This document shows, piece after piece, positions 3,001 through 25,725 of a stretch of 64,000 nucleotides of DNA (positions are counted from its first letter, which is position 1; each line of letters starts with the position of its first letter). The stretch is from Ramazzottius varieornatus (Eukaryota; Animalia; Tardigrada): positions 496,001 through 560,000 of the forward strand of contig BDGG01000013.1 of the NCBI GenBank assembly GCA_001949185.1, given 5' to 3'. The notes below the pieces were generated by a model that was not told the DNA's origin, did not search any database, and saw only the letters and a list, made by a program, of their open reading frames with translations. The translations under genes were made by a program, and so were the position numbers.

Positions 3001-3937
3001 AGGAGCGGAAGAAGGCAACTTGGGAAGCGGAGCGATCCAGTTATCGGGCGAAGCTGAGCGTTCAATCTTCTTGGAGGTTGCTGCTCTACTCTTTGCGTTC
3101 TTCTTCGGTATGTCCTCAGCGTCTAAGCCTTGGGAGCTAGAAACCGTTGGCTTGGTAGACCTGGAAAAAGCTGCAGGAACTTTGGAAAGGAAAGCATCAG
3201 GCGAAACTGTGCGCTCGGCTTTCTTTGCAACACCTTTTCTCTTTGCGTTCTTTTTCAGCATTTCCGCAATATCAAAGTCGCAGGAGTATGCAACAGCAGG
3301 CTTCGAGCGCTGTGACGAAACTGCGGGCAATGTAGGAGGAAGTGTCACCCAGTCAACAGGCGAAGCTGAGCGATTAGTCTTCTTCGAGTCAGCTTTACCC
3401 TGCGTATTCTTCTTTGGCACCTCGTCGGCGTCAAAGTCGTATGGATTGGACGAAAGTGGTTCCGGAGGCTCCGAGGAAACCGCAGGCTGAGAACGAGAAG
3501 TGGTGGGAACAGGCAGAGTCGAGATGAGCACTGCCAGTTCGGACTGAGACTTCTTCAGGGGAAGTTGTCTTCCCGCGTTTCCTTTTGCCTTCTCCACTTT
3601 CCCTGAAACTTTCGATGGAGCGCTTTCTGCTACCTTCCTTTCGGGAGACTTCTCTGGCGACTTGTTAGCGAGGCGAGCACTGAGCGAACCCAAACTCGCA
3701 GTGGTGAATTTCTCGTTGTCACTCTGCAACAAAGCATAAACTGACGCACAAATCAATGAATCAAGCGCCCAAGTCTATAAGCTATCTTACAGGGGTAGAG
3801 GACGATCTGAGAAGTGCGTCAAAGTCGCTGGACGGATTACTGCGCCCGCGAATCGGTCCACCGACAAAGTCCGCAAAACGGCGTGGAGGTCGAGAGCCGT
3901 GTCTTGTGTAGACTTCGCGAGATCTGGGGGCATTCAT
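1..3937 (-). CDS. WAPL: Wings apart-like cohesin release factor (multi-exon, 3' end runs off the window)
   Basis: Exon 1 (ATG 3937) reads MNAPRSREVYTRHG...SDFDALL, resembling the WAPL N-terminal KTYSRKG...FDEVF. A long S/P/K-rich region follows. The helical domain LIKGLGPQHPMPVRCLNAIKLALK...NLSLAVAAVVLVQSTDSLKINLDRKGLNILKEILE and WFIDEIRRQGILEYCI matches the WAPL domain. Confidence 0.85.
488..608. repeat. Tandem pair of 49-bp palindromic elements (CAAGTGGCGCAC-N25-GTGCGCCACTTG family) in a WAPL intron
   Basis: Units at 488-536 and 560-608, both with 25-nt spacers, 72-bp period. Confidence 0.85.
1631..1760. repeat. Tandem pair of 49-bp palindromic elements in a WAPL intron
   Basis: Units at 1631-1679 and 1712-1760; the second has perfect 12-bp arms. 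Both are preceded by a CTCGA(C/T)AAGAT flank. Confidence 0.9.
2764..2825. repeat. Intronic minisatellite (AAGGCCGTG x4, 17-18 bp period)
   Basis: Four AAGGCCGTG units seen directly within the WAPL intron at ~2669-2850. Confidence 0.8.
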
Positions 3938-4447
3938 CCTGCTGTAAAGCTTTCAAAACGCAGTCCGATCTACCTACCAAACAGTCCGAAATGGTCGGTG
4001 AACTTCAAACAGCCTATAAAGTATGCATGATTGAATAGCACCGTTCAGAGAACAGCGAACGTTTGTCCACTTTAGAACACAAACGTAAGAAGTCGGGAGT
4101 AAGAATTGGGAGACAGGCAGGGCTGCTAGCTTGCTGCCTGCAGAAGTGAGACTGGAAGAAGAAATCGGAAATTTTGGAAGATAAACTTGAAAAAGGAAAA
4201 AGCACAGCAACACACGTTACTAGACTTACGTCACACAGGTTATGTTGGATTGTTAGTAAGTCATGTCGTCCGTACTCTCGTCCAGTACGTCAGCCATATG
4301 ACATCATAGGCTGCGATTCTAAAACGCGAATATTTTTCTGGCGAGTGCGACCTCCACGGACCACAGCTTTACCTCGATGAAATTTTGCCGTCGTTACCGT
4401 AGATCTTGCTCACTGTTGTGTATCTGTAGCGGAATTCGAGGATCACG

Positions 4448-7400
4448 ATGACCCACAGGAAGAAGCTAGAAGACGACTGGGAGACGGAGACTAGCTCGGA
4501 TTCGGATGACTCGGACGACTCCGATGATGACAGTAAGTCAGCTGTTTTATTATCACTGATCGTACCTCGAGGTGGTGCACTATGTCACGTGTGTGTTCTG
4601 TTTTCCTGGTCCATGGTCACGTGGTGAGTGCGCCATCCGAAAGTTCTGTTGGACTGTTTTGCTGTTCTGCTCGGTAGCTGATTGACTTGATTTGTGGCTT
4701 AGAAATTGACTTGTCTGACTTGGACGATGCTACTCTAGATGAGATGGCGCGCAACATGGAGATTGCTGACGACTTCAGCGTTCCTAATGGGCGGCAGGGA
4801 ATGGGTCACGGTCGATTTTTGGTCCACACCGGTTCTGGGCGCCAGCTGAATCCTCAATACGTCCAAGTGCAGCATCCCCAAGGCTTGAAAGGCAAAGCTG
4901 CTGCAGACTACTGGCGCAACTACGGCCGAATGAAGAAAATGGCCGCCAAGAACGAGAAGGCCATGCATGGTACATCGCCCAAGAAGGACAAGAAGGCAAA
5001 GATGGAGGACAAGAAAGAACGACGACGGCTGAAGATGGAAAAGAAACTACAGAACAAAGATCCCACATCGGTAAAAAGGAAACGGTAACTAGCTGTCTTT
5101 GCGCAGGACGTCAGCGGCGTCCGTTTTACGCACCGGCGCTCAGGCTGGAATGCGTTGCGAATTCTGACGTCGTGAGCGCGCCCAACTGGTAGAATGGGCG
5201 GTTTACTTCGCTGTCATGCACGTGCGTGCTTGCCTTCCGTCACTGTTGCACGACACTATGTGTGCATATGCCTGCGTGCGAATGATTGTTCTTGTTTCCG
5301 TTTTGCAGTTTCCGGCGCTTTTGCTTCCAGACAAGATTCGGCAGAAAATCGACGAGACCGTTGATACTTTCAACAAGTACAGACGTGAGCAGCAGAGTCT
5401 AAAGAAGAAGAAAGAACAGCAGGCGGTCGTAGAGGATTTGTCTCCGCCTGTGGACGAGGAGGTCGATCCGGAGGCCATGGGAGCTTCTGAGGACCAGTAT
5501 GAGCGCATGCGTGAGATCGCTCCCGTGGCTCAACAGATTCGCATGGCTTTTCCGAAGGTTCCCACCAAGTCCGATATCGACGAGTCGAGAATCGAAGGTT
5601 TGAGTATGACCTACTTGGATGAGCTGTCGCAGAAGCAGAGTAACCTTGCATACCAGGAAATGTTGAAGTTCAGAAGGAAACTGCCAGCCTTCCAAGTTCG
5701 ACAGGTGGGTTGGAACATACCTCACATTTCCTCCCTCAAAACTGATATGAACGATTTTTTCTTCCCCTTTACAGAAATTGCTGGATACGATTGAGAACAA
5801 CCAAGTCGTCGTCGTTAGTGGAGAAACCGGTTGCGGGAAAACTACCCAGGTAATTTACGTACATCCTTCATTACCAAAATTTGTTGAAAGTTACTTTAGC
5901 TCATTGAGGACGATGCGGTTAACGAAGCTTCGTTGGTGATTTTTAGTTGCCTCAGTTTATTTTGGACGACTGGATCGAACGGGGGGATGGTGGCCGATGT
6001 CGCATCATTTGCACTCAGCCGCGTCGCATCAGCGCCATCTCAGTCTCGGAAAGAATCGCCAAAGAACGTGCGGAGAAGTTGGGAAAATCTGTCGGCTACC
6101 AAATCCGCCTCGAAAAGTACAAACTGCTTCTTGGAAATTTTTTTGGCTGCTTTTTTAGCTCGATATGATGATGTTGTTTTCAGGGTGATGCCGCGAGAAA
6201 CGGGCTCGATAACAATGTGCACGACGGGCATCCTTCTCCAGTGGCTAACTGGAAACCAGTAAGACACTTTTCACTGAATGTTTCTGTCTGAGTTTCCTGT
6301 GGGAACTGTGAATTAACTTTGTCTGTGCCTTTTAGAGATTTGAATAAGATATCGCACGTGATTGTCGACGAAATTCATGAGCAAGATATCTTGTCGGACT
6401 TTCTGCTGATCATCCTAAAGGATCTCCGCATACGTCGTAAGGATCTCAAGATCGTCCTCATGTCGGCCACCATGAATGCCGAAAAGTTTTGCGCATATTT
6501 CGGTAAGGCACATTAATGAACTATCTGAAGATTGTTGTTCTGGAGTTTCAAAAATGTATCAAGGAAACATGATTTTCTTGCAGATGATTGCCCGATGGTT
6601 CATATTGCTGGCTTCACTTTCCCGGTCCAACAGCTTTTCCTGGAAGATATCCTGGCTCTAACCAAGTACGAGTTTCTCTTGTAGATCTTGTTTACTCCCA
6701 ATTAGGATTTCTAGTTCTGGCTTTACGATAGTTGTTTCTCTGTAGTTATGTCCCTCAAGACAATAAGATAATGAAGAGGCCTCCAAAACGCCAGAACGAC
6801 CCGGAATGGAACAACTTCATGTTGTCTCTTCGGAAGAAGAACTTGACTCGCAAAGTGCTGGAAACGCTCCATGACTTTGACGAGAGCATTGTCGACTTCA
6901 ACCTGATCTTGACGCTGATCCGGCACATAGTCAAAACTACACCGGAAGTAAGTCCGCAGTTTCTCAGCAAGCGTGATTTAGACCACGTGACATTTGAGTT
7001 ACTCTGTCCACTGCTCAAATGTCTTTTCGAATATTTCAAAGTTTTGGCTTAGTTTTTATATGTGTTGATACAGCGAACAGAGAAGAATGAGTTTTATGTT
7101 TCGTTCTTTTTGCAGGACGAAGCCATTTTGGTCTTTCTGTCTGGATGGGAAGATATAAAAAAACTGAATACTCTCTTAGAAGGCGCTTTCGGTTCTGGCC
7201 AACGGGGTAGTCGCTTCCTGGTAATTCCTCTTCACTCCATGATGCCCACTATCAACCAACGCCAAGTCTTTGAACGTCCGGAGAACCAAAGAAAGATCGT
7301 CATTGCAACCTCGATCGCTGAAACCAGGTACATCCCTCTCGGCAGTTGTTTCATCACTGGCGCACTCCACACCTAGTTTTGCACACGGTAATGCGCCTCT

Positions 7401-10006
7401 TGGTCGAGGCTGAACTCATCTCACTGCAGTGGCGCGTTTCGGTAGCGTTTAAGCATTGCCAGTGCGCCACGTCACACGGAAGGCGCGCAGTCCTGACAAA
7501 GTGGCGCAGAATATTGCTTCTGGCAGCAGAACAGTGCGCCGGTTTCTTCGGGCATTTAATTTTTTGTCTTTGCAGCATCACGATTGACGATGTGGTTCAT
7601 GTCATCGACACCGGCAAGATTAAAATGAAGGACTTCGACGTGGCGCGCAATATCAGTACGTTGACCGCTCAGTGGGTTTCCGTGTCGAACGCCAAACAAC
7701 GCAAAGGACGCGCTGGACGGTAAATCGAACTCTCCCCCCGCTTTGGACCTTTGTTGTAACGTTCAGCTTGGGTCTCGCGGCTTAAATAATGGCACCCTTT
7801 CTTTTTTTTGCAGAGTCAAGAGCGGTGTCTGTTATCACCTGTTCACTTCCTACCAGTACAACCTGCTGGAACCGTTTCCCTTACCGGAAATGAAGCGTAC
7901 TCGCCTGGACGAACTCATCCTACAACTGAAGGTACGTTGTTTCTGAATTCTTACGAAATTTAGCGCCGCTATAAACCGGCATTCCGCGATTGATTGATTC
8001 GAAGGCGAGTAGGGAAATCGTAACACTCGGCATCACGCACCTGTATACATTGAATCGCATGTTTTTCATAGGGCGTCGCTACGCAGGTGAAAGATGCTCA
8101 TTGGATAGACTTCTCTGATCGTTCTTGCTTTGCAGTTGCTTCGTTTAGGCTTGGTCCAGCCTTTCGTCGAGAAGGCCATGGAGCCGCCCAGTCACGAAGC
8201 GGTTGTCCAAGCTCTGGACCTGCTGAAGCTTATAGGGGCCTTGGATGAGGAAGAGAACCTAACGCCGTTGGGTAGTCTGCTGGCCAACATGCCCGTTCCA
8301 CCTCAGCTGGGCAAGCTGATGTTCCTTGCCTGCATCTTCCAGTGTCTCAATCCCATCCTCAATGTGACTGCCGTCCTCGGCTACCGCGAGCCCTTCTGCA
8401 CGCCACTGGGCAAGGAAGAAGAAGCCAGGAGAGCAAGGAACAGCTTCGGCGCTGGGCTGAGTAGTGATCACTTGACGTACCACGAAGCTATGAAGGTAGT
8501 AACTGTGATTTGCGACCAATATCAGTCCCATGAGTTAGAATTGGTTTCGGTTTTCACGCACCTGCATACTCGCTTATGAGATCTCCTTTAGAGGGGTTCT
8601 ACTTTAGGCAGGTACGTGAATGACGCTGATGGGTGTTGGTTCACGTACCTGCATACCAGAAGATGCGGTCGTAAAATGGCTCGCCGTATGCAGGTGTGGT
8701 GGTTCAAGCTTCAACTGTCTGCGTACGCGTGGGCATGCTTGCTGTTCGGCGCCTTGTATGCACGTGGAGAAAACTGGCCTCGTAGTTGTTCTGCCGTTCG
8801 CATTCTTCCACGCCAGCGTTGTTATGTCTTTTCCTAGGATTATGTGGATTGCGTGATCAAGGACGGGCATAATGCCATGAAGTACTGCTGGGATTCGTAC
8901 ATGTTCAACACCACTTGTGTGGTAAGTACGTTTAGCATTGTGATGGAAATTGCAAGATGGTGGGGATATTGGTAGACTTTGTTGCTTATTCCAGCAACTT
9001 CTCAAGATGAAGAAGCAGTTTGCGTACATCCTGCAGAGCGCGGGTTTTATCAAAAACGCGGACCCGATGGACGGATATGCCAACCATAACTCCGGTAACT
9101 CTTTGTGACTGTCATCAGTTTCCTTAACATCCTGAGAGACTGTGTAGTATTGTGGGTTCGTACAGGCGATGACGACATCATTCGGGCGGTTCTGGCTGGC
9201 GGCTTGTATCCCAACTTGGGCACCGTAAAACGTCCAAAGAACAAACACATGTCGTACGTCATATTTTCCTTTCGGTTCGCATATCTTCTTGGATCTTATG
9301 TCTGGTTTAGGGTGCCGGTGTTGACGCAGAATTTCGCCGACAAAATCTGCGTGCATCCTAAGAGCATCCTGTCACGTCAGAACGAAGCTGAAGGCATCGT
9401 CGTTTTCTTCACCCAAGTCAAGACTAGCAAAATCTACATTCACGACTTGACGCTGCTGAAATCCAACCTTCCTGTCGCCCTTTTCGCCAAGCGAAGCACA
9501 GTTGGCAAGGTATGTCGCAATCCACATAGTTGAGACTCAAATCGGTCGAAGCAAACAGACTCGACAAGATCGTTTTCCCAACTGGCTCTCAGCGTCAGCC
9601 AATAAGACCGCAAATCTGCGCAACTTGGGATAACAATCTTGTAAAGTTTGTTTGCCGATCTTCCGTTTGCTTTTCAGTTTTCCAGTTTGAAATTCTAACT
9701 GCAATTTCGCGTTTTGTTCACCGAATATGTTGGAACCTCTCTTCCTTCGTTTCGTAGAAGAAAAGCACGGTGGTGGCGACGATCGACGACTGGCTTCAGC
9801 TGAAGTGCATAGGTCCAGGAACGTACCAGTCTGTTGAGAAGCTGAGGAACGCCCTCGACGAGATTTGCCTGGACTTTTACCAGTCTCCTCCTTGCCAGAA
9901 ACTCCACATTGCAGAAGCCATTGACAGCAATCAGGAACGTTTAGCAGCGGCCAACAGCATCATCAAGCTGGTCATTGAATGCTTTAGATTTAAGACGTCG
10001 GCCTAA
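4448..10006 (+). CDS. DHX36: DEAH-box RNA/G-quadruplex helicase DHX36-like (multi-exon)
   Basis: [67 protein letters not shown]2 domain ([19 protein letters not shown]), HPKS OB-fold. N-terminal HPQGLKG resembles the DHX36-specific motif. Confidence 0.88.
7354..7545. repeat. Three tandem palindromic elements in a DHX36 intron
   Basis: Units at 7354-7402, 7426-7473 and 7498-7545; 72-bp period, 24-25 nt spacers. Confidence 0.8.
9559..9650. repeat. Palindromic element with extended inverted flanks (DHX36 intron)
   Basis: ACTCGACAAGATCGTTTTCC-CAACTGGCTCTC-N25-CTGCGCAACTTG-GGATAACAATCTTGTAAAGT. Confidence 0.75.
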
Positions 10007-12042: not shown

Positions 12043-12284
12043 AAAGTCTGCGTCAAACTCTGAAAGAGGCACGAGCTACCACTTCGCCACTTCTGTGGCT
12101 TAATAGTATTGAGAGCATCGTAAAGACTTATCATTTCCGTCCGGGGTTGTAGTAGCATCGGCCCTGAGCCCAAGACGGGTCGTTCTTCTGGCAGTGCATG
12201 CCGCCGCAGCAGTTCCCCCGTGACCCGTTGGCGCCTTCATAAGGCTGATCTGCAACATGCGGACAAATGATCAGTTAGAGGAGT
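12043..12284 (-). pseudogene. Inverted orphan duplicate of ICK peptide intron end, exon 2 and 3' UTR
   Basis: Near-identical reverse complement of 13225-13464. Cys2 TGT>TAT (Tyr) and a Q>R change; no exon 1 found upstream. Confidence 0.85.
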
Positions 12285-12919
12285 TATGACACACCCATGG
12301 TTTTGCGGAAGAAGCCGGAGTAAGCTAAGTAGGGCCTGCCCAAACTCTTCTCTTGTGACGTCACTTTTACGTCGACGCAGCTGACTAAGGTCACGTCTAA
12401 TAGTGTGGCCGGCACTGGCTACACGTACCATTTCCCAAACATCATCGACTGCGTATGTCGAACTTTTAGAGGATACTGGAGAAGAACAGAAACAACTCCA
12501 TCCGTGCTGGTGCTTCTTCTGGACGGGACGCTTTCCTCTGGCCAAATTATGTATTGCGAGGTGGTTATTATTACAGCCTTGGTATGATGTACATCACTAC
12601 AAACGTAAACGGCGTCAACGGGCAAAAAGCTACGTACCCGGCCCAAAGTCCACGCGGTGGACGTTTGCTGTGACAGTCAAGTAGGCAGTGGAGTGTGGAA
12701 AGCCCATGCCTGGCTGCACCTGTTTTCGTGCAGTCCTCTTCTGACGTGAAGCCTTTGAGACACAATCTGATAACGGTCCTTCAAACCTTTCCTCTAACCC
12801 TTCATTAGCTTGCTTGGCAGATGTGACGTAAAAACCTATTTATTCCGGTCCTCACGCTGTAATCGATTCTGTTACATGGAAATAACCAGAGATAAACATC
12901 GATCTTCCGCGTTCGGTTA

Positions 12920-12948
12920 CCAATAGGGCAGAATTTCGCGTATAAAAA
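12920..12948 (+). promoter_or_regulatory. CCAAT and TATAAAA boxes upstream of the ICK peptide gene
   Basis: CCAAT at 12920-12924 and TATAAAAA at 12941-12948, ~125 bp before ATG 13071. AATAAA at 13518-13523 downstream of the stop. Confidence 0.55.
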
Positions 12949-13070
12949 GAGCCGCGATGGACGGACAGAAACACATGACCAGTGTCTTATTCGATTTCTT
13001 CCTGACAAGCTTTTCCGTTTACTATTAGTATTCTAAACGCTCGGTCTACCCGTCGTTTCTTTCCGTCAAG

Positions 13071-13376
13071 ATGAAGCTTCTCGCTCTCCTTTTAGTGTGC
13101 TTGGCTGTCAGCAGCTGTTTGGTGGTAGTAGTCCAGGCTTGCCAGGGTCACGGTAAGTTTAGAATTTTAACACCGTACTATACAAGAGTACTGCTTGTAC
13201 TTCGCTGTTCGCCTCAAGTCAACCACTCCTAACTGATCATTTGTCCGTATGTTGCAGATCAGCCTTGTGAAGGCGCCAACGGGTCACAGGGGAACTGCTG
13301 CGGCGGCATGCACTGCCAGAAGAACGACCCGTCTTGGGCTCAGGGCCGATGCTACTACAACCCTGGACGGAAATGA
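13071..13376 (+). CDS. Small secreted inhibitor-cystine-knot (knottin) peptide, 2 exons (13071-13152, 13258-13376)
   Basis: MKLLALLLVCLAVSSCLVVVVQA signal peptide plus CQGHDQPCEGANGSQGNCCGGMHCQKNDPSWAQGRCYYNPGRK. Framework C-x6-C-x9-CC-x4-C-x11-C; GTAAG...TTGCAG phase-1 intron; C-terminal GRK. Absent from the ORF track. Confidence 0.88.
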
Positions 13377-14230
13377 TAAGTCTTTACGATGCTCTCAATA
13401 CTATTAAGCCACAGAAGTGGCGAAGTGGTAGCTCGTGCCTCTTTCAGAGTTTGACGCAGACTTTTGTACAAGCTATTGACTAGATAACAACATCACTTCT
13501 GTCCAATCTCGTGATGCAATAAATTTTCCTGTGTCATGTAGTGTTGATTCGCCGAAACGATTTTACATCTGCGCTAGTTCATACATACCACTCCCAAAAA
13601 CAGGTCAATTTTGCTGTTGTCTATCTTTCGGATCACCCTTACTCGCACGCGCTCCTAACCCTCTGAAAGATTGTCAAGGGCACAGGATTCCAGTAATTCA
13701 TGCTTCAGTGCATCGCCTACTCGATTTACAACTTGGAACGAAACACTCCCGCTATCTCATTCGACTTTTGACTTCCGACTAACTGTTAGCTTATTAGCTG
13801 TAGCAGGTCTTGTAGCAGGTCGTGTAGCAGGACTTCAGGTATGCGAGTCGAAATCGGGTGTTTGAACTGTCACGTCTCGGTGGTAGGACCGCAGCCGAAA
13901 ATATTGATAGTCCCGCAGGACTGCTCAGAATAGAGCTTCTAGTAGACTACTTCATTTTATGCGTCATCGGTAGCCGGATTATCGAATGCACAGTTGCTTG
14001 TCAGGGCCCCGGTTACAATGAAACTTGATCTAATTGGATCTGGTGGCCTGAGGCGGGACGAAGCGCGGAAGTACAGTTCGTCCCATTACTGTTTGTAGAT
14101 CCCAACTCCGTGGGCTCCTATTGGTCGCAAGCCGAGTGCTGTGGCGGGATGTATTGTCGCAAGACAGTGTCCGCGTGGGCCGAAGGCAGATGCTACTACG
14201 GAGCGCCGCACAGCGGACAAGGTTGCCATG

Positions 14231-14606
14231 AGCAAGTCAGCATGGATGTACCGGTAGCCAGCACGGACCTGCCATCCACTGTTATGAACAATCAATCATT
14301 GAGTAACGTGAAATACCGCTTTCGGTTCGATCAAACAACGCACCGTTCGTAAGTGCAACGTGGAACCTATCGTGGTATAGCCTGGCTGTTTTATAGTCAG
14401 TCGTAAAAGCAGGATTTATTTTTTGCGGTCAGACGTTGGCTGGGAAAAGCCCAGGCTAGATCGTTAAAGGATCCACATTACACTTAGAAGCGGTCCGTGG
14501 TTTGATCGAACCCGAAGCGATGTTTTACGTTGCTCAAGGACTGATTGTTGATCATCGTGGATGGCAGGTCCGTATTGGCTACCGGTACATCGATGCTGAT
14601 TTGGCT
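14231..14606. mobile_element. MITE with ~120-bp imperfect TIRs and 3-bp (ATG) target-site duplication
   Basis: Arms 14231-14355 and ~14481-14606 are inverted. ATG at 14228-14230 and 14607-14609. Removal restores the in-frame exon end (GCHGRTH|GT) as in the intact paralog. Confidence 0.85.
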
Positions 14607-14812
14607 ATGGAAGGACCCACGGTAACCAAGACAAACTAGGTGGTACCTATATGAATTTACACGTGTTGTCATTGACCAAGTGCCACTGAAGCTTACTTGA
14701 CCATACAGGTTCATAAGGTGGACTTTCCGAAGGACTTCTTAGCGCAGATCAGTTCAGGCGTACCATGGAAGCCTGTGAATCAAGCTCTCAGCCAGATCAG
14801 TATCCACGAGTA

Positions 14813-15253
14813 CGAGGGAAAAGTTGCAAAAGTTAGCCCGATCGTATAAAGCGTACGAGGTAAACGACATAATTCTGGCATTCTGATTTTCGCACCATAA
14901 TTCGGGCAACGCGAAAAGTTTGAACATTATTGTCAACGCTCGATTCATCTCTCATCGTACGCCTGTTGATACTACATTAGGCTTTTTGACATTGGACAGA
15001 CCCATCCCTCCCCCAGGCCAAATTCCCGTGCTCCACAACGCTTTGTCGTTCTCAAACCTATCGAAAACTCGACAAGAGGGCTCAGTCTACCTCAGGAGAC
15101 AAGAAGCAGTTCATTGCGCGCAGCAAGAGCTGAGAAAAAAATGCCCGAATCATGTCGTTTATCTCGTAGGTCTTTTGATAGCCTACTTCCATTACTGGGT
15201 GGCTAAATTTATAACTCTGGCACCACCCGGCTAACTTTATGACTCTTCCCTCG
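14813..15253. mobile_element. Non-autonomous Tc1/mariner-like element (TA TSD) with a nested MITE
   Basis: TA-CGAGGGAAAAGTTGCAAAAGTTAGCC ... GGCTAACTTTATGACTCTTCCCTCG-TA. Splits CCACGAGTA|CTGAAAGCC of the GH19 exon. Confidence 0.85.
14856..15166. mobile_element. Nested TA-flanked MITE, same family as 36877-37212
   Basis: TA-CGAGGTAAACGACATAATT ... AATCATGTCGTTTATCTCG-TA; internal sequence aligns by eye with 36877-37212. Confidence 0.8.
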
Positions 15254-16247
15254 TACTGAAAGCCATTCAGCTAGCCGGCGTGACCAGCAAGGACGAACTG
15301 GCCATGTTCTTGGCGAATGTCTACCATGAGAGGGCAACACTGCCATACGTGTCCGAACTCAATGCAGAGTCGGGTTACAGCACATAATCCGGTAGTCTCA
15401 CCTATGAAGTGGCGTGGGTATATTCAACTGTTTCATGAGTACAAATATCGCGATGCATCCATCAAGTCAACGGTCTTCCGTGAGCTTGGGGGATATAAAG
15501 TGGAACAATGATTTTCGGATGGACCCTGACCGGTGTAGTTGTTGTTCGGGCATGATGGTACTATGTATATCCATTTAGGTCGCCGACCGAAAGATCGTTC
15601 TCGTTGTTACCTTGGTGTAAAGCGACCTGACCTCACACTTACCGGCAGGTTTTTACACTGGTGCAGAGTGTTGTAAAGCGATGCTTTTGGGTTTCTCTCC
15701 AGCTTTCTTGGTTCGCCTAATATAAATTCAAGCTTCACCGTTACTGTACACCCTTCTCGACAGTGACGCATTATCGAAGTGAGAATTAATTATCACTATA
15801 GTCTGTTTTAAGTCAGTGGCAGTTGCACGGGGAATCACACGTGTTCAGCCAGCTCTAACTGCAACCAGCGTGATTACTATTTAGCCTTTTTCTATCTGAA
15901 TTAAGGTATCTGAGGCAGTGTTATTTTACTAAGCAATTAAAATTATTAAAAGTCACGTGCTAAGGTTAAGTCTACGTGATCAGCTGACTGTAAGTTAAAT
16001 CAATTATCGCTGACGAATTTCAGTTATCAAAATTAAAATTCGATTTCCTATCATGGATCAATCAATCAAGCAGACACCAACCCGCACAATTAAAACGATT
16101 TTAATTATTTAGATCGATTTCCTATTAAAATGATTAAAATAACACTGAATTCTGAGGCCGCACGTGATGTAAATCTAATATGGATGAGAAAACAAGAAAG
16201 CAGCAGAGAGAATGAACAAATTGTGGAAGGCGTCTCGTTTCCAAGCT

Positions 16248-16637
16248 TTAGCAGTCATGCAAGTACCAATCGACAGGTATAACACCGAGGTGCAAGGGGG
16301 CCAGTTTTTTGAAAGCTGCTGGAGAAAGGTCGATGTGCTTCGTCTGGCATCCGGGGCATTTGTCCACAATCCTGACCGTAACAGTGGCACCGCTTTTCCT
16401 AGACGTGACAGTCGCGCACTTTCGGCAGATGGGAGCGTCGTTGGGGTTGGGTAGTTTCCCGTATCTGTCGTAGGTGTCGGGACTGACCGCCGCAACCTTT
16501 TCGCTGTCCGAGTTGAGAAAGCCACAAGCACCGAGGCCGTCGCTCGGGTTGTAGTACGTTGCTTTACCACTTCCGTGTGCGCCTGTAAACACCATCGAGC
16601 TGGCCACGAAACACAGACAAACACGGAGGAAACTCAT
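16248..16637 (-). CDS. Secreted RlpA-like double-psi beta-barrel (expansin/loosenin/barwin-like) protein, intronless, 129 aa
   Basis: Signal peptide MSFLRVCLCFVASSMVFTGAHG, then GKATYY..GLGACG..VAAVS..CRKC..VTVRIVDKCPGC..HIDLSPAAF..LGVIPVDW. Confidence 0.88.
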   Translation of the reverse strand: MSFLRVCLCFVASSMVFTGAHGSGKATYYNPSDGLGACGFLNSDSEKVAAVSPDTYDRYGKLPNPNDAPICRKCATVTSRKSGATVTVRIVDKCPGCQTKHIDLSPAAFKKLAPLHLGVIPVDWYLHDC

Positions 16638-17239
16638 CTTCGTAAAAACCTCAGACTCTCGCAAGGTTCCTATGAGAAAAATGCCGAGCTGTCTGACAGT
16701 GAATGAATGTGTGAAATTTGCTGTTTTTATTCTTCCAATGTTAGTCATATATCGCTTATTGCGTCACAAGCTACTTTATCGATTGATCTCCATGCACTGC
16801 CAGGGCTGTGAGGTTAAACCACGCGCACTACTTGACGCTAGATGTTAAGGAGCGTCTCAACGTGGATAGGGTTCACTAAGAGAAAACGATTCTGATTAAA
16901 TCTTGAATTTCTGGAGGACTGACTCAATCTAGTTCTGAACGCATGAATTTCGCTGGAACTCTGACCGCGTGCATCGATTCCAGGGCTTTTTTACGACACT
17001 TCCAGTCAACAAGTCGCCTCGACTTCGATCGTCTTTTTCGCAGAACACTCCAGTACTAAGAATTGCTTTCCCTAAACACGGCGTGGTTATGTATGATTGA
17101 AACTCAGTTAGCCGCTTGGGCTACTTAAAGGGCACTGCGGTGACAGCACACTACGAAATGCCACAAATCAAACTCTTGTTCTTTCCTTTGAAGGTTATTA
17201 ACAGCAACTCTCACAACTTATCCCTTCTGTCTATCACAA

Positions 17240-18272
17240 ATGAGGCGCTTGGTTGAATCCTTTTTCGTGTTAGCCATCGCCATTCTGATGTTGAAAGACA
17301 CCACAGCTTGTCAGGGTCACGGTAAGTACCATTTCGACCTATGAGTCTTCTTTACTAGACTGAGGACCTCGTGCTGATATAGGTATTATTCGAAACGTTG
17401 CCGGTTTTACAGATCACAACTGCGTGGGCTCGCACGAATCGCAAGCCAACTGCTGTGACGGCCTATATTGCCACAAACCGGTATCCACATGGGCTGAAGG
17501 CAAATGTTACTACGGAATGCCGCACAGCGGGCAGGGTGGCCATCAGAAAACGCACGGTAAATAAGACAAACTGGCTGGTACTCATACGTATGTAACTACG
17601 CGTGTCGTCATTGACCAAATTTTACTAAACTTTACCGGATTATACAGGTTCAGAAGGTGGACTTTCCGGAGGACTTCTTAGCGCGGATCAGTTCAGACGT
17701 ACCATGGAAGCCTGTGAATCAAGCTCGCAGCCGGATCAATATCCACGAGTACTGAAAGCCATTCAGCTAGCCGGTATCACCAGCAAGGAAGAATTGGCCA
17801 TGTTTCTGGCAAATATCTACCATGAGAGCGCGACGTTACGCTACGTGTCTGAACTGAATCCGGAGGCCGGATACTCCGGAGGCGTTGCCTACAAAGGTCG
17901 AGGGTATATTCAACTGACTCATGACTACAATTATCGCGATGCATCCATTGGAATGTATGGCGACGACAGACTGGTCAAGAATCCTGAACTTGTAGAGAAA
18001 GATCTGGATGTCGCGTGGGCAGTCACGGCTTGGTTCTGGAAAGCTAGGGTAAGTCGTCAAGATCTCATCTCATGTTACATTTCTTATGCTGATTGTTACT
18101 GATTGTACTGATTGTTACATTTCTTGTTCTCCAGGTCAAACCCACACTCAATCTGGCGGACTTCGACTCGTCTGTTAAAGCCATCAACAGTAGGGAGCTG
18201 TACGGGTATAGCGAGCAGCTAGCGCGCCGTAAGCGATACCATAGCGCTATCAAGAATATCCTCGTGAGTTGA
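17240..18272 (+). CDS. Secreted ICK-domain + GH19 chitinase/lysozyme-like fusion, 4 exons (17240-17321, 17413-17556, 17648-18048, 18135-18272)
   Basis: Signal peptide, then CQGHDHNCVGSHESQANCCDGLYCHKPVSTWAEGKCYY, then a Gly-rich linker, then ELAMFLANIYHES..VSE..YKGRGYIQLTHDYNY..NPELV..AWFWK..SVKAIN. Canonical splice sites and a continuous frame. Confidence 0.9.
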
Positions 18273-18502
18273 GTAACTACTCACCAGCTTACCACTGCGC
18301 CTGCTGATATCACTTCAGCACACCCCAAAATAGTATTCGATCGAGTGTTTCACCAGCTCCTTGCCTTAATTTCTCCCCTTCTCCCGGGAAGATTTCAGCT
18401 TTGTTATAACCTCTCATTGGATCGATTGTCGACATTTTAATGACTTTCAGATTTCAAGCAGCCCTAATAAATGTAACTGATATCGAAAGTTAATCTTGCC
18501 CA

Positions 18503-19487
18503 CTATTCATCTTCCCAAATAACACATTCTTCCTCATCGGCTTTTGCAGGTGCCATCATATCAATGACTTTTAAACTGGGTACCGCCTCTTGGGTAACTG
18601 GCACCACCAACAAGGGGACGACTTTTTCCATATTAATGGCTCTCTGCGGGTGCGAATTCATCTGCACAACTCCAATCTTCATTTTGGACTCGGCTTCCTG
18701 CGCATTCGATTCCTCGATGGCCGGTGCGGTATCTTCCATGCTGGCCAGCTTCAGCCTGGGCACTTCCTGCTTGGAGAGATGTATGGTCGGTCTGGGCACT
18801 GTCCGCTGAGGTGTGGTGGTCAATTCCTTCTCGTTTCTCGTTGTCGAATCAGGTTGTCTGTAGTAGAAGACGGTTGCTGACGCCGTCTTCTTCGTCCGTA
18901 TGTGGGTCGACTTCTTTGCTATTACTGTCGTCGTTGTGGTAGATGGCGTGGTTGTCTCGTCGACCGGCCCTGCCTCCTCGGCAGCGTCTTCAGGCTCGTC
19001 GGAGCCTTCATCCGCTACTGGTTCTTCGGTCGTGGTGGTGCTGGTAGTCGCGCTGGGAGTAGCGGTGGCGTCATCGTAAAACTCGGTCAGACCGTCGATG
19101 ACGGAACAACGAACCTTACGCTTGTAATTGCAGGCTTTGATATAGACATCGTATACCATGTTACCGGGACAAACCTTTTCCGTATACATGCCATCTTTGC
19201 ACTGGAAAGACAAAGGGTAAACTTTTACCTCAGTACAGAATCGATCTGCTGGGAAATGTTACCTGCAGGTAGGAATTGCAGGACATGGGATGACGAAACT
19301 CTCCGTCGCCAATCTGACATATTTCTCGTAACAGCAGTTCCGACTCTTTCAGCTGACGTCGGTACCGTTGGTGAGCGGAGAGATTTTGATCGCCTTCTTG
19401 AAATGGCAATGGCGACGATATGACAGATCCAAGAGACACCAATAGCGACAACAGACGGAGAGAGCACTGCACAGTCGAGACTTCCAT
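18503..19487 (-). CDS. Secreted chitin-binding type-2 (CBM14/peritrophin-A) protein with Thr-rich mucin tail, 2 exons (19263-19487, 18503-19201)
   Basis: Signal peptide, RYRR furin-like site, CQIGDGEFRHPMSCNSYLQCKDGMYTEKVCPGNMVYDVYIKACNYKRKVRC six-Cys domain, and TTSTTTTEEP-type tracts. Confidence 0.85.
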
Positions 19488-20037: not shown

Positions 20038-22285
20038 TTAGCTGCAGGGATCGTTTACGGTGAACGGTATCTGCGTCAGTTCGCCGATCAAATCTTTTCT
20101 GGCGCAGTCAACTGGCGCATACATCTGTCGAATCGTCGCGCTGTGCGACATGATCCCTCCGAAGGCGTGTACTTCTCCGGCTTGTTTTGCGGTAATCAAG
20201 TTGCGGTTCTTGTCCAAGAACTTTCTCAGCCACTTGTACTGGCAATCACAATGCAACAACCACAGATAGTCTCTTTGCTCTACCGTCATCGTCCCGTCCA
20301 AAGGGATCCCACCGTCGAATGCCACCTGTTGCAGCAGGGGTAAACTTTCGTAAGCTCCTTGCTCAATCCTAGCCACGGTGGAATTATACAGCACCAGCAT
20401 GGTTAATCGTGGGAAGAACAGAAAGTCATCCTGGCCGATAACCACATTCCGGCAATTGCTCAATCCAATATGCGTGATTGCTGGTAGGTTTAATGATCGT
20501 AGCATGGACATAGCGAGGCCGTCAAAATCAGCGATGATTAGGATAATAATCACGTCAGCCGCTGGCGCGAAATCGTCGTTGGAAAAGGTCCTGCGGCCTT
20601 TGATGGTAAATTCCATACCGCGACTGGCGTTGAGTCGTCCGATGTTTGTCAGAAACTGGCCAACTTCCAGGTTGTCCGCTGCTGCTTCGCATTGCGTGAT
20701 CAGACCAAAGCCTCTCTTGCAGTTTTTGGAGCCCGGCATGACCCGGCAGTTTGCTGTGTTAACGGACGAGCATTGCCGCCGATCGATGTCCCTTATTTGG
20801 AACTGGGCATGCTTGAGCAGCTGTTTCCTGTCGACCTACGCACCCAACCGAAAACTGGCGCTTTGTCCTTGCCACAGTATTTTAGCCTTCACTCATCAGC
20901 TTGTCGACTTGTAGGCTTACCTGGCTCGTGCTGGCAGGTGTGGCCGGTTGATCCGGTGGATCAGGCGTGATATCAAGTAACTTCGGGTTGGACGGATCGG
21001 CAGTACTGCTTTCCAGCTGGTGACAACCGTAAGCAGTTTGGATCTTGGCGATATCCAAAGAGCTCAAGCCGTCCAGCTGGCCCATGCGGCTGTTTGTCTT
21101 CTTCGGTAGAATCGTCGGGCCTGACTGGTTCATTGCGAAGACGGTGAAGGGATAATGCGTTAAAGACTCGACATCGTACGGTCCGGCTGATGGCCCGTAG
21201 TCGACGTAGGCGTTGAAGTAGTTGATGGCGTCTGGGAGGACGTTGTCCCGATTGATCGTGACAAAGGTGTTGCGGACGACTCGAGCGTTCTCGTGGAAGA
21301 GGCCTAGTGCGTGAAGAACGAGGTGCTGGATGGCACCGGGCTCTTGGAGGCAGTCTTGAGTAACGGAGATCAACTGTTTACCGCCTTGTCGACCCACGTT
21401 TGAAAAACATCTGGAATTTGAATGGAGAGTTTTGTCATCCTCGGTCTTATGAATTCTACAGTCTGTGTTGATGGTGTACGTACGCAAAGCCCTTGATAAA
21501 GTTAATGAAATCGACTTCGGTTTTCCTAGGGACGAACTGAATGCAGGATCCTCCGAGAGCCTGCTGGATTTGTTGAAGAGCATTTTCTATGAAACGTCGG
21601 TCCGAGTTTCCTACAAAAGACACAACTAAATGGAATGCCAATAATTTGGGCTAACTTTAAATTTCAGTGCTAATAATGATGATAATACTTCGTACGCAGT
21701 TTGCTCGTGGTTCCGTTGATCGTGTACGGTATTATCCCGTTCGACCAGCGAGAAGATGAGTCGGGTGTGAAGATCGTGGTTACTGTTTTCGCTCGTAGCT
21801 GCAACATTAACAAATAAAAGGAACTCGAACCGTTTCTTCATTAGTTTACGCAAGCTACCACAATATGCGGTGAAGATGGGATATTTGCTTAGGTGAGAGT
21901 GCTCAGAAGACCGCAGTCCTTACCACTGATGGGGGCTCGTCAGTCTCGAAACCCATGAGGTCGCCTTCGAAAACATCTGGGTCAAATCGGTCGCGTGGGT
22001 CTCTTCCGACCGTGGCTGAGACGACATCCGCAGAGATCAGCGAATACCAATCTGAAATTCACATTATAGTATTATGATCCGTCTTTGAATTCAAAATATC
22101 AGAAGGCTCGCTGGTTATTAAAGGACAAGACCGAATTCGACAGACCTACGAAACTCGAAAGTCCGAGAATAGTTGATTGGACAGAATTTGATCGACTTAC
22201 TGTCAGGAATAGCTCTCCCACTGACGGGATATCCACGGAAAACGGACAATAAGATGGCGGATAAAAGCGCTAGAAACGGATCCAT
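20038..22285 (-). CDS. Astacin-family (M12A) metalloprotease-like protein, probably inactive, fused to a C-terminal LRR-like domain
   Basis: Signal peptide, FEGDL prodomain, CIQFVPR, CFSNVGRQGG, QHLVLHALGLFHENAR, YDVESLTHY, MGQLDGLSSLDIAKI. In-frame splice into an exon with LRR/LRRCT-like WLLHCDCQYKWL. Confidence 0.8.
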
Positions 22286-24097
22286 TTGACCGGCAAGGGT
22301 TCACCGGAAGTGGAGCGCTATTATTCCTCAAAAGAAAACGTATGTGGCATCAAAGATCGCAAATTAGTAAGTTGTCCACGTCTCGCAGTTTCTCCTATAA
22401 ATTCAATATTGACAATAAGTACCCCACGTGAAGCGCAGCATAAGTCATGTTTTCGTCATGATCACGCTGGGCGGACCTTCCGGGGAATGCAGTTGTGACG
22501 TGCTATCATGAAGCAGAAGGTCTCCGGCGCTGTGGCTGATACTCTGCGCATAAGCTCAAAATCGTAGTCAGCGGCTGTTTCTTTACACCACCTATAACCG
22601 ACTTAGATATGAACTACTTCGGCAAAATTTTGATGTCCAATCCAGGCTACCTATACCTTCACGCCGCTTGAAAGTTCGAATCATTCTTGCTGATTTATGC
22701 TTCTAGTCCGTGCGTGTCGTTTGGGAAACTCGTTCCGATGAAGTCATTGACTTGTCTTTCAAATTTCTACAGGTTTTGTGGTCTTCTTGGCAATCAGATC
22801 CGGGAGAGAAAGGCTTACAAGCACAATGTTCGTAGTTGGGCAAACTTCGTCGAAGCAAATCGCGAAAATACGAAATCACAGATAACAGAAGTGACAAGCT
22901 GGTTACCAAGTTTACAATCGCTGAATATCACACGTGAAGCTGGTAACCAGAAACATCACGTTTCTCTTTGGATGGAGCAGTCTTGAGGGGATGTTCCACT
23001 TCCACCGGAATCTCCGGTCCAAATTGTTTTGATTGTTCCTCTGTCTCCACAATACCTGCGGTGACAACAACTGCTAATCCTTCATAAACGACAAGTATAG
23101 AAAATCTCCAGTGAACTGACCATCGACCAGTTTGCACTTGATTTTCCTGCGGAAATCGCAGTTCCTGGTTTTGATGTTAAAATACATATTTCCTGGACAG
23201 TCGATCTCCGAGTAGGATCCATTAAAACACTGAAAGACGATGGGGTGGAAATTAGCCTGAAAACGACATCAATCGATAATAGTGTATTGCTCCATTCTTA
23301 CCTGAACATAAGACCCACAAGCATACGGATGCCCTACAGAACGTAAGAAACAAACCGGTTATGTTAGAGCGCGAAAATTTCGAGTGCACGGCGTAACACA
23401 GCCGTTAAGATGCCCAGGACGGAGCGAAGCTCTTACCGAAAGACCCGTCGCCATTGTCGCAGATCTGGAAACACATCGAGACTGAAGCAAGCGCTCAAAA
23501 GAGGAGAAAGGAGTCACCAGAAGAATTAACGTACTCTACGTAGGAAGGGATCCATTTGACTTCCTTGTCGCTTGACCCGATTATGGCTCGAAGTATGGTA
23601 GGCAGGAAGCGCCACGGCTACAGCTGTTCAAAATCGGAGCAGTTAGTCCCCACTATCATGAAGTTACCGTCGGGGTGTAAGGAGAGCGCAGCAACGTACC
23701 CGCAAAGGTCAGGATCAAGATATCCCACGCCAATCGCTGTTCCATATTTCGGTGAATAGAAAAAAGGGTTTCCAGCACGCCAATACACCACGAAGTCAGC
23801 TTTGTCCCTCAAGCTCACCCCGAAATCTCTGGCGAGACCTAATCAGTGTAGTCTCACAAGCGCAAAGCAAGATGTCCAAAGCTGAGCATTGTCGATGATT
23901 GTTCTAACAAGCGAAGTAAAACGCGGAAGCAGGTCAATAGAAGAAAGTTCTTGGTCGGTTAAATAATCGCTGGCGGCGATATATCAGTCAAGTTTATTGG
24001 TTAATTTTCGTTTGCGAACTACTTGTGAGTTCGGAATAACTTCCCTATCGACCTAGCCGAACTCCGTGTTTCCCGAAAGATCGCTTCAGTCTGCTTG

Positions 24098-25725
24098 TTA
24101 GATACCCAGGTTCCCATTTGCACCGCTTCGTATGAAATCCAAATATTTGAAGACATTGGTGTACCGGGATCCTTGTCCTGATCCACATTTCCCTACAGCC
24201 AGTCATCCAAGTCAGGAACGGAACAGAAGAAAGAGATGAGGTTTTCAGCTGTTGTTTTACAAAAGTCGTAAAGTAAATTTTATTACCAACTCCGAAGGAA
24301 ACAACTCCACTTTGGTAGTACGACTTGGTGGTCATATCAAAGCAGACAAGTGGTCCACCACTGTCCCCTACGGCAAAATTTCACCTAGATTAGCTGTATC
24401 GATATCTCGACCTCGAACTACAGTACTCGTACCGTATACAGTATAATTCTTCACAAAGATACAGCCGGACGAAAAAACTCGAGTTACCGTAACAGTTGTC
24501 AGTTCCGACGATTCCGCCCGCGCACAAAAAGTTATTGCCATCCTGTCCACCGGTATAATGGCACTTTGGTCCAAAATTCTTCAGAATCTGCTGGTAGATG
24601 AATTTCAACGGAAGAGGTACCCTGTCGTTTGACCCACTGTCACTTTCTTGGCCATATCCGCTGTTGACGCACCATTCACCGACAGATGGCTCTTTAGTGG
24701 GTAGACAGACTGGGCATGAGCACTGGGCGTTGATGTCGATGTCGCGATCGAGAATTAGCACGGCGATGTCGTTGCCGAGGGTGCCATGGTCATACTGCGG
24801 ATGGCGGATGATCTTCGCCAGGTTGAAACTCTGTCCGCAGTTCCTGGCGCCATGGGGGGAGGAAGAGCCGTTGAATGCGCTGTCCAAAGCACCGACCATC
24901 ACAATAAACGCAGTAGGAGACATTAACGCGGCTCCTCGGCTGGAAAGACCAAAGTTTTCAACACCGCAAACTCGAACGACGAGTCGCGTTAACGGGTAGA
25001 TGGAAGGTAAAGGAAACTCACAAGACTGCTGTCCCAAGTGGCGCATGCTTCCGGCCAATATTATTGAATACGTGCGTCACTTTAAAAACTGAACCAGACT
25101 AATTTTCCAATTGGCGCAGTCTACCGGCTATCACAATGAGAACGTGCGCCACTTGAGACCACGATCATGTACGTTTTGTTTGCCGATCTTCCAAATACTT
25201 CAGAGTAACGCAGTGCGCGGCTGTTAGGATCTTCCGGCTGCCGATGATACTTCCTCCGCAACGGACCAGACCAGGTACGGTCTTCATTTGAATGGACACC
25301 TGCCAGCAAAGGAAGCCACCTGTGTCGTCGTTCACGTCCATTCCGCCAACGATTCTCAAAGTGGATGACTTGGTATCCGATGCCGATGGCGCTGAAATTG
25401 ATATGACAGAGTGTCAACGGGTAAGACTAGTGGTGAATATCAAAATATCGTAGGTAGGTGAAATACTTTTGCCGCTTCCGTTTTTAGCAAGGACCTCTTT
25501 TTCCTCAAGGAGCATCTTTTGCGCGAACATGACGGTAACAGGTGGTCGCGGTGGCTCTCCCGTGGCGAACTGACTGGATAGATCGAGCGGGTCCGTTGCA
25601 TGACTGAAGCGTGGATGACCACAGAAGCTACAGTTGACCATACTAACATGAATGTTTAGGAGGATGGATAACAGGAGCAAATTCGAAATACGGCTACTGG
25701 AGATGCTCCGCGGATGACCTGCCAT
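24098..25725 (-). CDS. Secreted trypsin/chymotrypsin-like (S1A) serine protease
   Basis: RIVGG activation site, LTAAHC, NDIAVL, GDSGGPLVC, GVVSFG; catalytic triad intact. Confidence 0.9.
25035..25155. repeat. Tandem pair of palindromic elements in the serine protease intron
   Basis: Units at 25035-25083 (25-nt spacer) and 25108-25155 (24-nt spacer). Confidence 0.85.

Follow-up and report, generated by a model that had tools for sequence, protein, structure and literature searches.

The stretch of DNA analysed here (the window) comprises 64,000 nucleotides of the tardigrade Ramazzottius varieornatus. It corresponds to G000:C13:496001-560000, a part of the 1.66 Mb contig C13 (BDGG01000013.1), in a genome of 55.8 Mb and 200 contigs that was searched for related sequences. 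Between positions 13071 and 19487 of the window, four adjacent genes encode a knottin peptide, a protein with one DPBB (double-psi beta-barrel) domain, the protein RvY_16177, in which a knottin module of the inhibitor cystine knot (ICK) type precedes a GH19 glycosidase domain, and a protein with a CBM14 domain. We consider it probable that they are a real group of secreted-protein genes, that the group arose partly by local duplication and exon shuffling, and that the products have putative wall-directed roles.

The gene models were obtained by reading the sequence directly and translating each exon singly. Signal peptides were assigned by eye from a hydrophobic N-terminus with small residues ahead of the cleavage site. 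Transcripts were mapped for the 6,000 letters at window positions 13060-19059 with the contigs of four runs (X1, X5, X7 and X8) from four studies. The mapped contigs bear splices, poly(A) tails and cDNA adaptors and are therefore derived from RNA.

The knottin gene lies on the plus strand and encodes 66 amino acid residues. Exon 1 (13071-13152) was identified by its translation and is followed by a GTAAGT donor, and exon 2 (13258-13376), which contains the six-cysteine mature peptide, comes after a GT..AG intron of 105 nt. The intron was removed in all four runs, with spliced contigs of the four studies that match exactly and with poly(A) loose ends; the poly(A) ends lie near 13536-13540. The word depths of the knottin contigs reach hundreds to thousands, compared with tens for the other three genes, which is only a hint that the knottin is highly expressed, contig word depth not being valid for ranking genes by expression.

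RvY_16177 is encoded by four exons, also on the plus strand. The signal peptide is found in exon 1 (17240-17321; translation and contigs), and the knottin module and the start of a Gly/His-rich linker in exon 2 (17413-17556; junctions in X5 and X7). Exon 3 (17648-18048) continues the linker and codes for most of the GH19 domain, as judged from Pfam and from alignments with solved structures and the family, and exon 4 (18135-18272) holds the C-terminal GH19 part. The introns of 91, 91 and 86 nt were removed in X5 and X7, the last one also in X8. As in the knottin gene, all introns are GT..AG and the contig junctions lie exactly at the predicted sites. The exon-wise reading gives 254 residues and agrees letter for letter with the database protein (P0037). 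One cDNA of X8 has its 5' end at 17691, within exon 3 and 13 nt before an in-frame Met. It might mark the start of a GH19-only, leaderless transcript but is probably a truncated cDNA, because X8, a cDNA library with adaptor sequence, shows a similar internal end in knottin exon 2 (13272).

The DPBB gene (16248-16637, minus strand) is a single exon with a Pfam DPBB_1 match and encodes 129 residues. Unspliced contigs of it occur in four runs, an unspliced transcript reaches from 16080 to 16765, and a cDNA adaptor is joined at 16685, approximately at the 5' end. The gene stands head-to-head with RvY_16177, with roughly 0.5 kb (about 16685-17170) between the transcript starts. The CBM14 gene lies on the minus strand as well. 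Its exon 1 (19263-19487), which was read from the sequence, codes for a signal peptide and the first two cysteines of the domain, and exon 2 (18503-19201), found with Pfam CBM_14, contigs and a poly(T) loose end, codes for the last four cysteines and a tail. The intron of 61 nt between them has GTAACA..CAG ends and is predicted from the letters only, lying outside the mapped stretch; the product is 307 residues long. The CBM14 transcript has its poly(A) end near 18422 and the RvY_16177 transcript its 3' end near 18445, so the two overlap tail-to-tail by about 24 nt. The presence of four intact, adjacent, signal-bearing genes, as claimed in an earlier sequence-only reading of this DNA, was thus confirmed by the canonical GT..AG introns, by the transcripts and, for the signal peptides, by eye. 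No mention of RvY_16174 to RvY_16179 was found in the searchable papers.

The knottin gene and RvY_16177 were then compared exon by exon. In both genes exon 1 has 82 nt, codes for a signal peptide ending in ACQGH and leads into a phase-1 donor. Exon 2 of RvY_16177 is 50% identical to exon 2 of the knottin gene and 68% identical to a pseudogene copy that is described below. By sequence, the knottin gene and exons 1 and 2 of RvY_16177 are paralogues.

The catalytic part of RvY_16177 has a different set of relatives. Its closest GH19 paralogue in the genome (L001, G000:C6:744123-747293) shows about 73% identity and shares an intron site with it, after WFWKAR; it carries a C-terminal LysM, has no knottin and shows no obvious signal peptide. 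In a family alignment the nine nearest GH19 relatives are leaderless, all nine starting at the GH19 domain, and the 80-residue extension of signal peptide and knottin occurs only in RvY_16177. The identities to the leaderless relatives are 46-57%, with 46-51% for the rotifer Rotaria magnacalcarata, according to the search used, and 57% for P0041, which carries four LysM repeats. The other four GH19 loci of R. varieornatus have no detectable knottin exon in a search with the ICK exon (for the C2 paralogue, 1 kb upstream). At one of the GH19 loci (L005, G000:C7:229716-232904), a divergent GH19 frame is immediately preceded by the reading frame of a protein kinase. A recent bacterial origin of the GH19 domain was also considered and found to lack support: the closest bacterial segments share 26-41% identity, compared with 46-57% for the leaderless kin, in a pattern-based and hence limited scan. 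As the simplest history we infer that a leaderless GH19 gene received, on its upstream side, the two exons of a knottin gene.

Relatives of the complete protein were searched in a library of 1.84 billion proteins, with P0037 in full and with its single exons; the knottin and CBM14 genes were searched exon by exon. At least four representatives (P0047, P0049, P0099 and P0105) have a signal peptide, a six-cysteine knottin-like module, a linker and a GH19 domain. They are collinear with RvY_16177 over its full length, at 35-39% identity, and the knottin-GH19 design is therefore recurrent or older than R. varieornatus.

Further copies are found next to the live genes. At 12043-12278 (minus strand) lies an inverted, dead copy of knottin exon 2, which also takes in the 3' flank and 29 nt of the intron. 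Over its 236 nt it shares 98.3% identity with 13229-13464; exon 1 is missing and the second cysteine codon has changed to Tyr. At 14097-15462 (plus strand) lies an ICK-GH19 pseudogene whose three blocks keep 76-93% identity with the live gene. One cysteine is lost, there are in-frame stops and a 10-nt frameshift, and exon 1 and the 3' part are missing. Two insertions resembling miniature inverted-repeat transposable elements (MITEs) interrupt it: a palindromic low-copy repeat (14236-14614; 75% reverse self-match, about eight other loci) and a MITE about 300 bp long that bears terminal inverted repeats (14854-15150, the start being approximate). A third one, of about 232 bp, lies in or beside the 3' untranslated region of the DPBB gene (15916-16147), and the contigs break at 15915 and 16147. 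For each of the last two, at least 40 copies of 86-93% identity were counted, from 214 candidates in the case of the 300-bp element; these counts are lower bounds. Transcripts cover the pseudogene only in a trace at 14660-14859 and at the inserted repeat, whose contigs continue into dissimilar sequence. Two dead duplicates in a repeat-rich stretch had been noticed before and were found again here, together with the three insertions.

The knottin gene has also been copied as a whole. The locus and its flanks (12282-13599) are duplicated 112 kb away on the same contig with 94% identity, and this second copy (G000:C13:621651-622969, minus strand) is a complete gene including about 790 bp of upstream sequence; its mature peptide is identical and its signal peptide slightly different. 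In total the ICK exon finds nine matches across the genome. Four further loci of the family are on contig C14, each with a signal-peptide exon ending in ACQGH and a phase-1 intron. Across the donor position that the knottin gene and RvY_16177 share, three family loci besides these two show ACQGHG or ACRGHG. In a C14 fusion, the signal-plus-knottin design continues in one open frame into a different cysteine-rich domain. It exists in two inverted copies about 37 kb apart (L013, G000:C14:283223-286309; L014, G000:C14:320100-323186), one of which is broken by an N run. Elsewhere in the protein library the knottin module occurs in tandem arrays of two to six repeats.

The adjacency of the knottin gene and RvY_16177 is accounted for by their being paralogues that arose by local duplication and exon shuffling, and it is therefore no evidence of selection for clustering. 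The sequence-only reading had spoken of convergent assembly, which is not the source of this adjacency. A related proposal is that the four genes are a co-adapted and co-regulated wall-attack toolkit that has been kept together, a convergent analogue of the plant PR-3, PR-4 and hevein proteins. All four products look secreted and are transcribed, and the head-to-head arrangement of the DPBB gene with RvY_16177 and the overlapping 3' ends of RvY_16177 and the CBM14 gene would allow shared regulation. Short intergenic distances are, however, expected because the genome is compact, and two of the four members are neighbours by duplication. Near the complete knottin copy at 112 kb distance there is no GH19 or DPBB match. 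GH19 occurs at four other loci and DPBB at one, all of them on other contigs, and neither these loci nor the second knottin copy are linked to one another. We regard such a jointly selected set as unlikely and prefer duplication and shuffling as the source of the arrangement.

Six cysteines, in the order C-C-CC-C-C, are present in the mature knottin, which ends in P-G-R-K-stop, a possible amidation signal. In RvY_16177 the cysteines are at residues 24, 31, 41, 42, 47 and 59, which gives a spacing of 6-9-0-4-11, and the free knottin has the same pattern. The best match of knottin exon 2 among solved structures was Alo-3 (1q3j) at E = 0.013. Alo-3 was also the top solved match of two tandem-repeat relatives, at E = 0.003, with all six cysteines aligned, and at E = 0.026. 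No Pfam knottin family was matched by the knottin or the ICK module at E <= 0.05, and there were only insignificant traces of Toxin_7 and Tachystatin_B. The kinship with Alo-3 is therefore suggestive and not proven, the E-values being marginal and a Pfam knottin match being absent. An Atlas model of residues 22-75 had assorted small disulphide-rich domains as neighbours with TM scores of 0.5-0.59, which mean little at such a length, and an Atlas feature search with the knottin module gave no usable match. Alo-3 has been described as a knottin-type antifungal peptide (PMC4874388). The knottin of the sequence-only reading thus resembles a peptide of known antifungal type, at a marginal degree of similarity. 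The same resemblance would suit the four genes as a jointly kept set for wall attack. A review of tardigrade immune pathways states that fungal parasites are documented and that antimicrobial peptides are still to be found (PMC7056985). In our literature search nothing relevant was found for tardigrade knottins, and for tardigrade GH19 only false positives from accession numbers.

The catalytic domain of RvY_16177 is clearly a member of GH19. Pfam Glyco_hydro_19 (PF00182) matched exon 3 at 2.5e-10 with 41 bits and P0037 with 35 bits (cut-off 25.5), and 39 solved GH19 chains were matched. Glu135 and Glu144, the catalytic residues, and Thr166, which holds the water, align in P0037 with those of solved chitinases and vary little or not at all in the family alignment. 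Among solved structures, loopless chitinases of plants and a moss matched best (7.6e-15 to 1e-13), and the SPN1S endolysin (4ok7) was aligned in part, at 4.6e-11. The domain is a minimal form that has no loop 2 and has the catalytic Glu pair nine residues apart. In the alignment to 3hbd and 5h7t, loop 3 is deleted together with its conserved disulphide, and G-F-G is changed to D-F-D. Chitin_bind_1 (hevein/CBM18) had no match in RvY_16177, and the N-terminal module shows the six-cysteine knottin pattern.

Signatures for chitinases and endolysins are given by GH19ED, the GH19 Engineering Database. The chitinase signature consists of Cys97, Cys105, F/L/W151, Gly190, Gly192 and F/Y/L222, four of the six positions being present in 62 of 63 characterised chitinases, and the endolysin (ELYS) signature of Ile33, Arg109, Gly118 and L/Y173 in SPN1S numbering (PMC8547705). 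In RvY_16177 the four chitinase positions that were mapped, Cys97, Cys105, Gly190 and Gly192, are absent. Judged by language-model features, among large clusters it lies closest to short GH19 proteins of phages and bacteria. The loss of loop 3 has been tied to a low affinity for chitin oligomers (PMC8547705). A loopless moss GH19 has no antifungal activity, and an added loop that gives wall binding confers it (PMC11018821). The name ICK-GH19 chitinase, which had been given to the protein earlier, holds for the GH19 family and the catalytic residues. The labels "chitinase" and "antifungal" are unsafe, because the enzyme is a minimal GH19 in which four of the six signature positions are absent. 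RvY_16177 is best described as a putative GH19 glycosidase acting on either chitin or peptidoglycan.

The DPBB protein matched Pfam DPBB_1 at 4e-14 with 53 bits (cut-off 28.8). The Barwin profile gave 27.8 bits (cut-off 21) and covered only positions 48-100 of 119, and solved barwins aligned across about 50 residues at E 2.6e-4 to 5e-3. The best solved match was the papain inhibitor SPI of Streptomyces mobaraensis (5ntb; 4.5e-19, residues 19-121), followed by 9ce9 at 3.4e-15 and by domain D1 of EXLX1 at 7.6e-12. The entry 9ce9 is deposited as an RlpA-like DPBB protein, and at a guess we take it to be the structure of the loosenin PcaLOOL12. The EXLX1 alignments (7wvr, 4jcw) comprise only the first ~100 residues, and the tardigrade protein ends right after D1. 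It is therefore not an expansin, because the second domain, CBM63, is missing; the earlier description as expansin-like does not stand, the best solved relative being a protease inhibitor. The features of single-domain RlpA-like proteins are all found: one DPBB_1 domain in a secreted-looking protein, conserved cysteines and an aligned H-x-D-L-S. RsRlpA of Rhizoctonia solani inhibits papain (PMC7662947), and single-domain DPBB loosenins loosen chitin and cellulose networks, as mentioned in PMC11869483 where it cites Monschein 2023. The conserved Thr and Asp are common to both classes, so the sequence fits a protease inhibitor and a loosenin alike, and a loosenin-like action is possible. The action of loosenins on both networks (PMC11869483) would also be in line with a toolkit kept for wall attack.

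The origin of the DPBB gene was examined with its homologues. The named ones are from agaricomycete fungi and from Kitasatospora/Streptomyces, with 42-48% identity, and among 23 matches there was no animal homologue outside R. varieornatus. In a tree of 24 sequences the tardigrade genes stand on long branches in a polytomy with fungal and actinobacterial sequences. A phylogeny of the domain had been suggested as a check; it gave the fungal and actinobacterial company and no donor. The genome has a second, divergent DPBB gene (L007, G000:C1:7307494-7310640, open frame 1279-1662), in which the CPxC cysteines and the Asp of H-x-D-L-S are replaced; it may be a functionally shifted paralogue. The GC content at third codon positions of the DPBB gene, 64%, is like that of neighbouring genes. 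Because the gene is intronless, has fungal and actinobacterial nearest kin, has no other animal among its 23 matches and has host-like third positions, it looks foreign-derived, fitting an old acquisition that was later duplicated and for which no donor can be named. The horizontal-transfer character proposed earlier is in this respect supported.

For the CBM14 protein, exon 2 alone matched Pfam CBM_14 at 1.2e-4 with 22.5 bits (cut-off 22.1; profile positions 19-53). The six-cysteine domain straddles the predicted intron and has a spacing of 12-5-9-12-7. The tail has 199 residues, of which the first 75 contain 35% Thr and Ser and the remainder is acidic, and the earlier term "mucin" is fair in the sense of a mucin-like peritrophin with a Thr-rich and then acidic tail. 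At least 80 CBM14 domain matches were found in the genome, this number being a lower bound. CBM14 genes are thus so common that this neighbour may be incidental, and their frequency also speaks against a jointly kept toolkit. The protein may be an ordinary peritrophin-like, predicted chitin binder and perhaps a mere neighbour.

The rest of the window contains intron-bearing animal genes for G-protein-coupled receptors, a kinase, a rhomboid, an astacin, a trypsin-like protease and a trefoil-GH31 glycosidase. Since the locus is surrounded by such ordinary genes, it belongs to the animal genome and is not a contamination. Shortly downstream of the four genes, on the minus strand, an astacin metalloprotease gene (20885-21641) is followed by a cysteine-containing frame resembling leucine-rich repeats (both within 20038-21641). 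A further CBM14 exon (23134-23235) and a trypsin-like serine protease (24390-25359, within 24390-25725) that has a signal peptide of its own lie there as well. All these are additional secreted-looking extracellular proteins in the region of the four genes. The trefoil plus GH31 glycosidase is at 56767-62366. At 1749-9533 there are several long open frames (up to 380 residues) with no Pfam match, which could represent genes particular to the lineage or mobile elements that have decayed.

These neighbours bear on the question whether the four products are gut-secreted factors that break the walls of food such as algae, yeasts and bacteria and organise a chitinous gut lining. The astacin, the trypsin-like protease, the further CBM14 exon and the trefoil-GH31 glycosidase in the same window would fit a digestive set, CBM14 peritrophins are typical of gut linings, and R. 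varieornatus is fed in the laboratory on Chlorella, whose wall has chitin-like glycans. However, the hydrolase neighbours lie several kb to tens of kb away with receptor and kinase genes in between, and small knottin peptides at very high abundance are typical of defence more than of a set of digestive enzymes. We hold a purely digestive group to be rather unlikely, and defence is somewhat more likely than digestion for the secreted set. Alternatively, the GH19, DPBB and CBM14 proteins might remodel the animal's own cuticle, eggshell or gut lining at moult or in development. The tardigrade cuticle is chitinous, and GH19, CBM14 and loosenin-type DPBB proteins can bind or act on chitin. Animals normally moult with GH18 chitinases, however, and no moulting role is known for an Alo-3-like knottin. 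A minimal GH19 without loop 3 is moreover linked to lower affinity for chitin oligomers (PMC8547705). We regard remodelling as very unlikely.

The preferred interpretation, a secreted-protein group built in part by duplication and shuffling, can be put as a sequence of steps. A two-exon knottin pair would have been copied in front of a leaderless GH19 gene, giving a secreted, knottin-tagged enzyme, of which a second copy decayed and gathered MITE insertions. The free knottin gene was later copied twice, once as a whole, 112 kb away, and once as a fragment that is now dead. The free knottin may serve as a secreted antimicrobial or antifungal peptide. The aromatic-rich knottin of RvY_16177 may act as a wall-binding or targeting module that replaces the surface binding the minimal GH19 lacks; this role is suggested because a loopless GH19 needs an added binding element for antifungal activity (PMC11018821). 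The tagged enzyme would cleave chitin or peptidoglycan of microbes or of walled food. The DPBB protein, from an old foreign-derived gene, would be a protease inhibitor or a loosenin-type polysaccharide loosener.

Some points weigh against this interpretation. The direction of the shuffling was deduced from family sizes and the leaderless relatives and not from a rooted tree. The similarity to Alo-3 is marginal (E about 0.003-0.03) and the Pfam knottin families have no match. Four of the six positions of the chitinase signature (PMC8547705) are missing in RvY_16177, and from this, together with its phage and bacterial neighbours, it follows that the substrate could be peptidoglycan or that the enzyme could be poor.

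A more far-reaching proposal is that the knottin represents a new family of wall-binding (chitin-binding) modules and the first tardigrade antimicrobial peptide, and that a class-I-like antifungal chitinase was independently built by exon shuffling. We regard this as possible but doubtful. If it were true, the knottin would give the GH19 enzyme the wall binding that plants gained through hevein and loop II, and tardigrades and the carriers of P0047/P0049-type proteins would have independently shuffled exons into a class-I-like antifungal chitinase. As a GH19-associated module the knottin would be new, because GH19ED records no known binding module on the non-plant eukaryotic groups (PMC8547705). 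Apart from this proposal, the immune effectors of tardigrades are essentially unknown, and a transcribed, Alo-3-like knottin family offers concrete candidates. RvY_16177 would clearly exemplify how a new secreted enzyme can arise when a pair of exons for signal and peptide is put before a leaderless catalytic domain. The DPBB gene is a well-integrated and expressed candidate for an old foreign acquisition, in a genome where such claims are disputed.

The locus can be compared with several known systems. The leaderless GH19 proteins, among them those of rotifers, and the tardigrade's own GH19-LysM paralogue are the closest kin of the catalytic domain and have the same minimal set of loops, and the C6 paralogue shares its intron position with RvY_16177. 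They differ from RvY_16177 in having neither a signal peptide nor a knottin, and the C6 paralogue and P0041 have a C-terminal LysM instead. Alo-3 of the beetle Acrocinus longimanus is likewise a small secreted peptide with a six-cysteine framework, nearly equal spacing and a core of NGSQGNCC..YCHK..W..G.C. Unlike in Alo-3, the first cysteine of the tardigrade knottin is coded in the signal-peptide exon, and the tardigrade-type module is also fused to GH19, fused to another cysteine-rich domain and arranged in tandem arrays.

The single-domain secreted DPBB proteins SPI (5ntb) and fungal RsRlpA are of similar length, about 110-130 residues, and SPI has the DKCPxC and HIDLS motifs in common with the tardigrade protein, which differs in being encoded by an animal gene, in being a putative inhibitor and in having an identity of 42-48% to the named relatives. 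With fungal loosenins and bacterial EXLX1 it has in common the DPBB fold and, in the expansin D1 groove, the conserved Thr and Asp positions; it is nearer in sequence to the protease inhibitor SPI than to 9ce9 and, unlike EXLX1, has no CBM63. Finally, the plant class I chitinases (PR-3) resemble RvY_16177 in having a signal peptide, a small disulphide-rich N-terminal module, a flexible linker and a GH19 domain with two catalytic Glu residues. The parallel with plant hevein-GH19 proteins that had been drawn from the sequence holds in that a small cysteine-rich module precedes GH19. The module is a six-cysteine knottin in RvY_16177 and an eight-cysteine hevein in the plant enzymes, and the catalytic domain of RvY_16177 differs from theirs in the absence of loop 2, of loop 3 with its disulphide and of the GFG motif.

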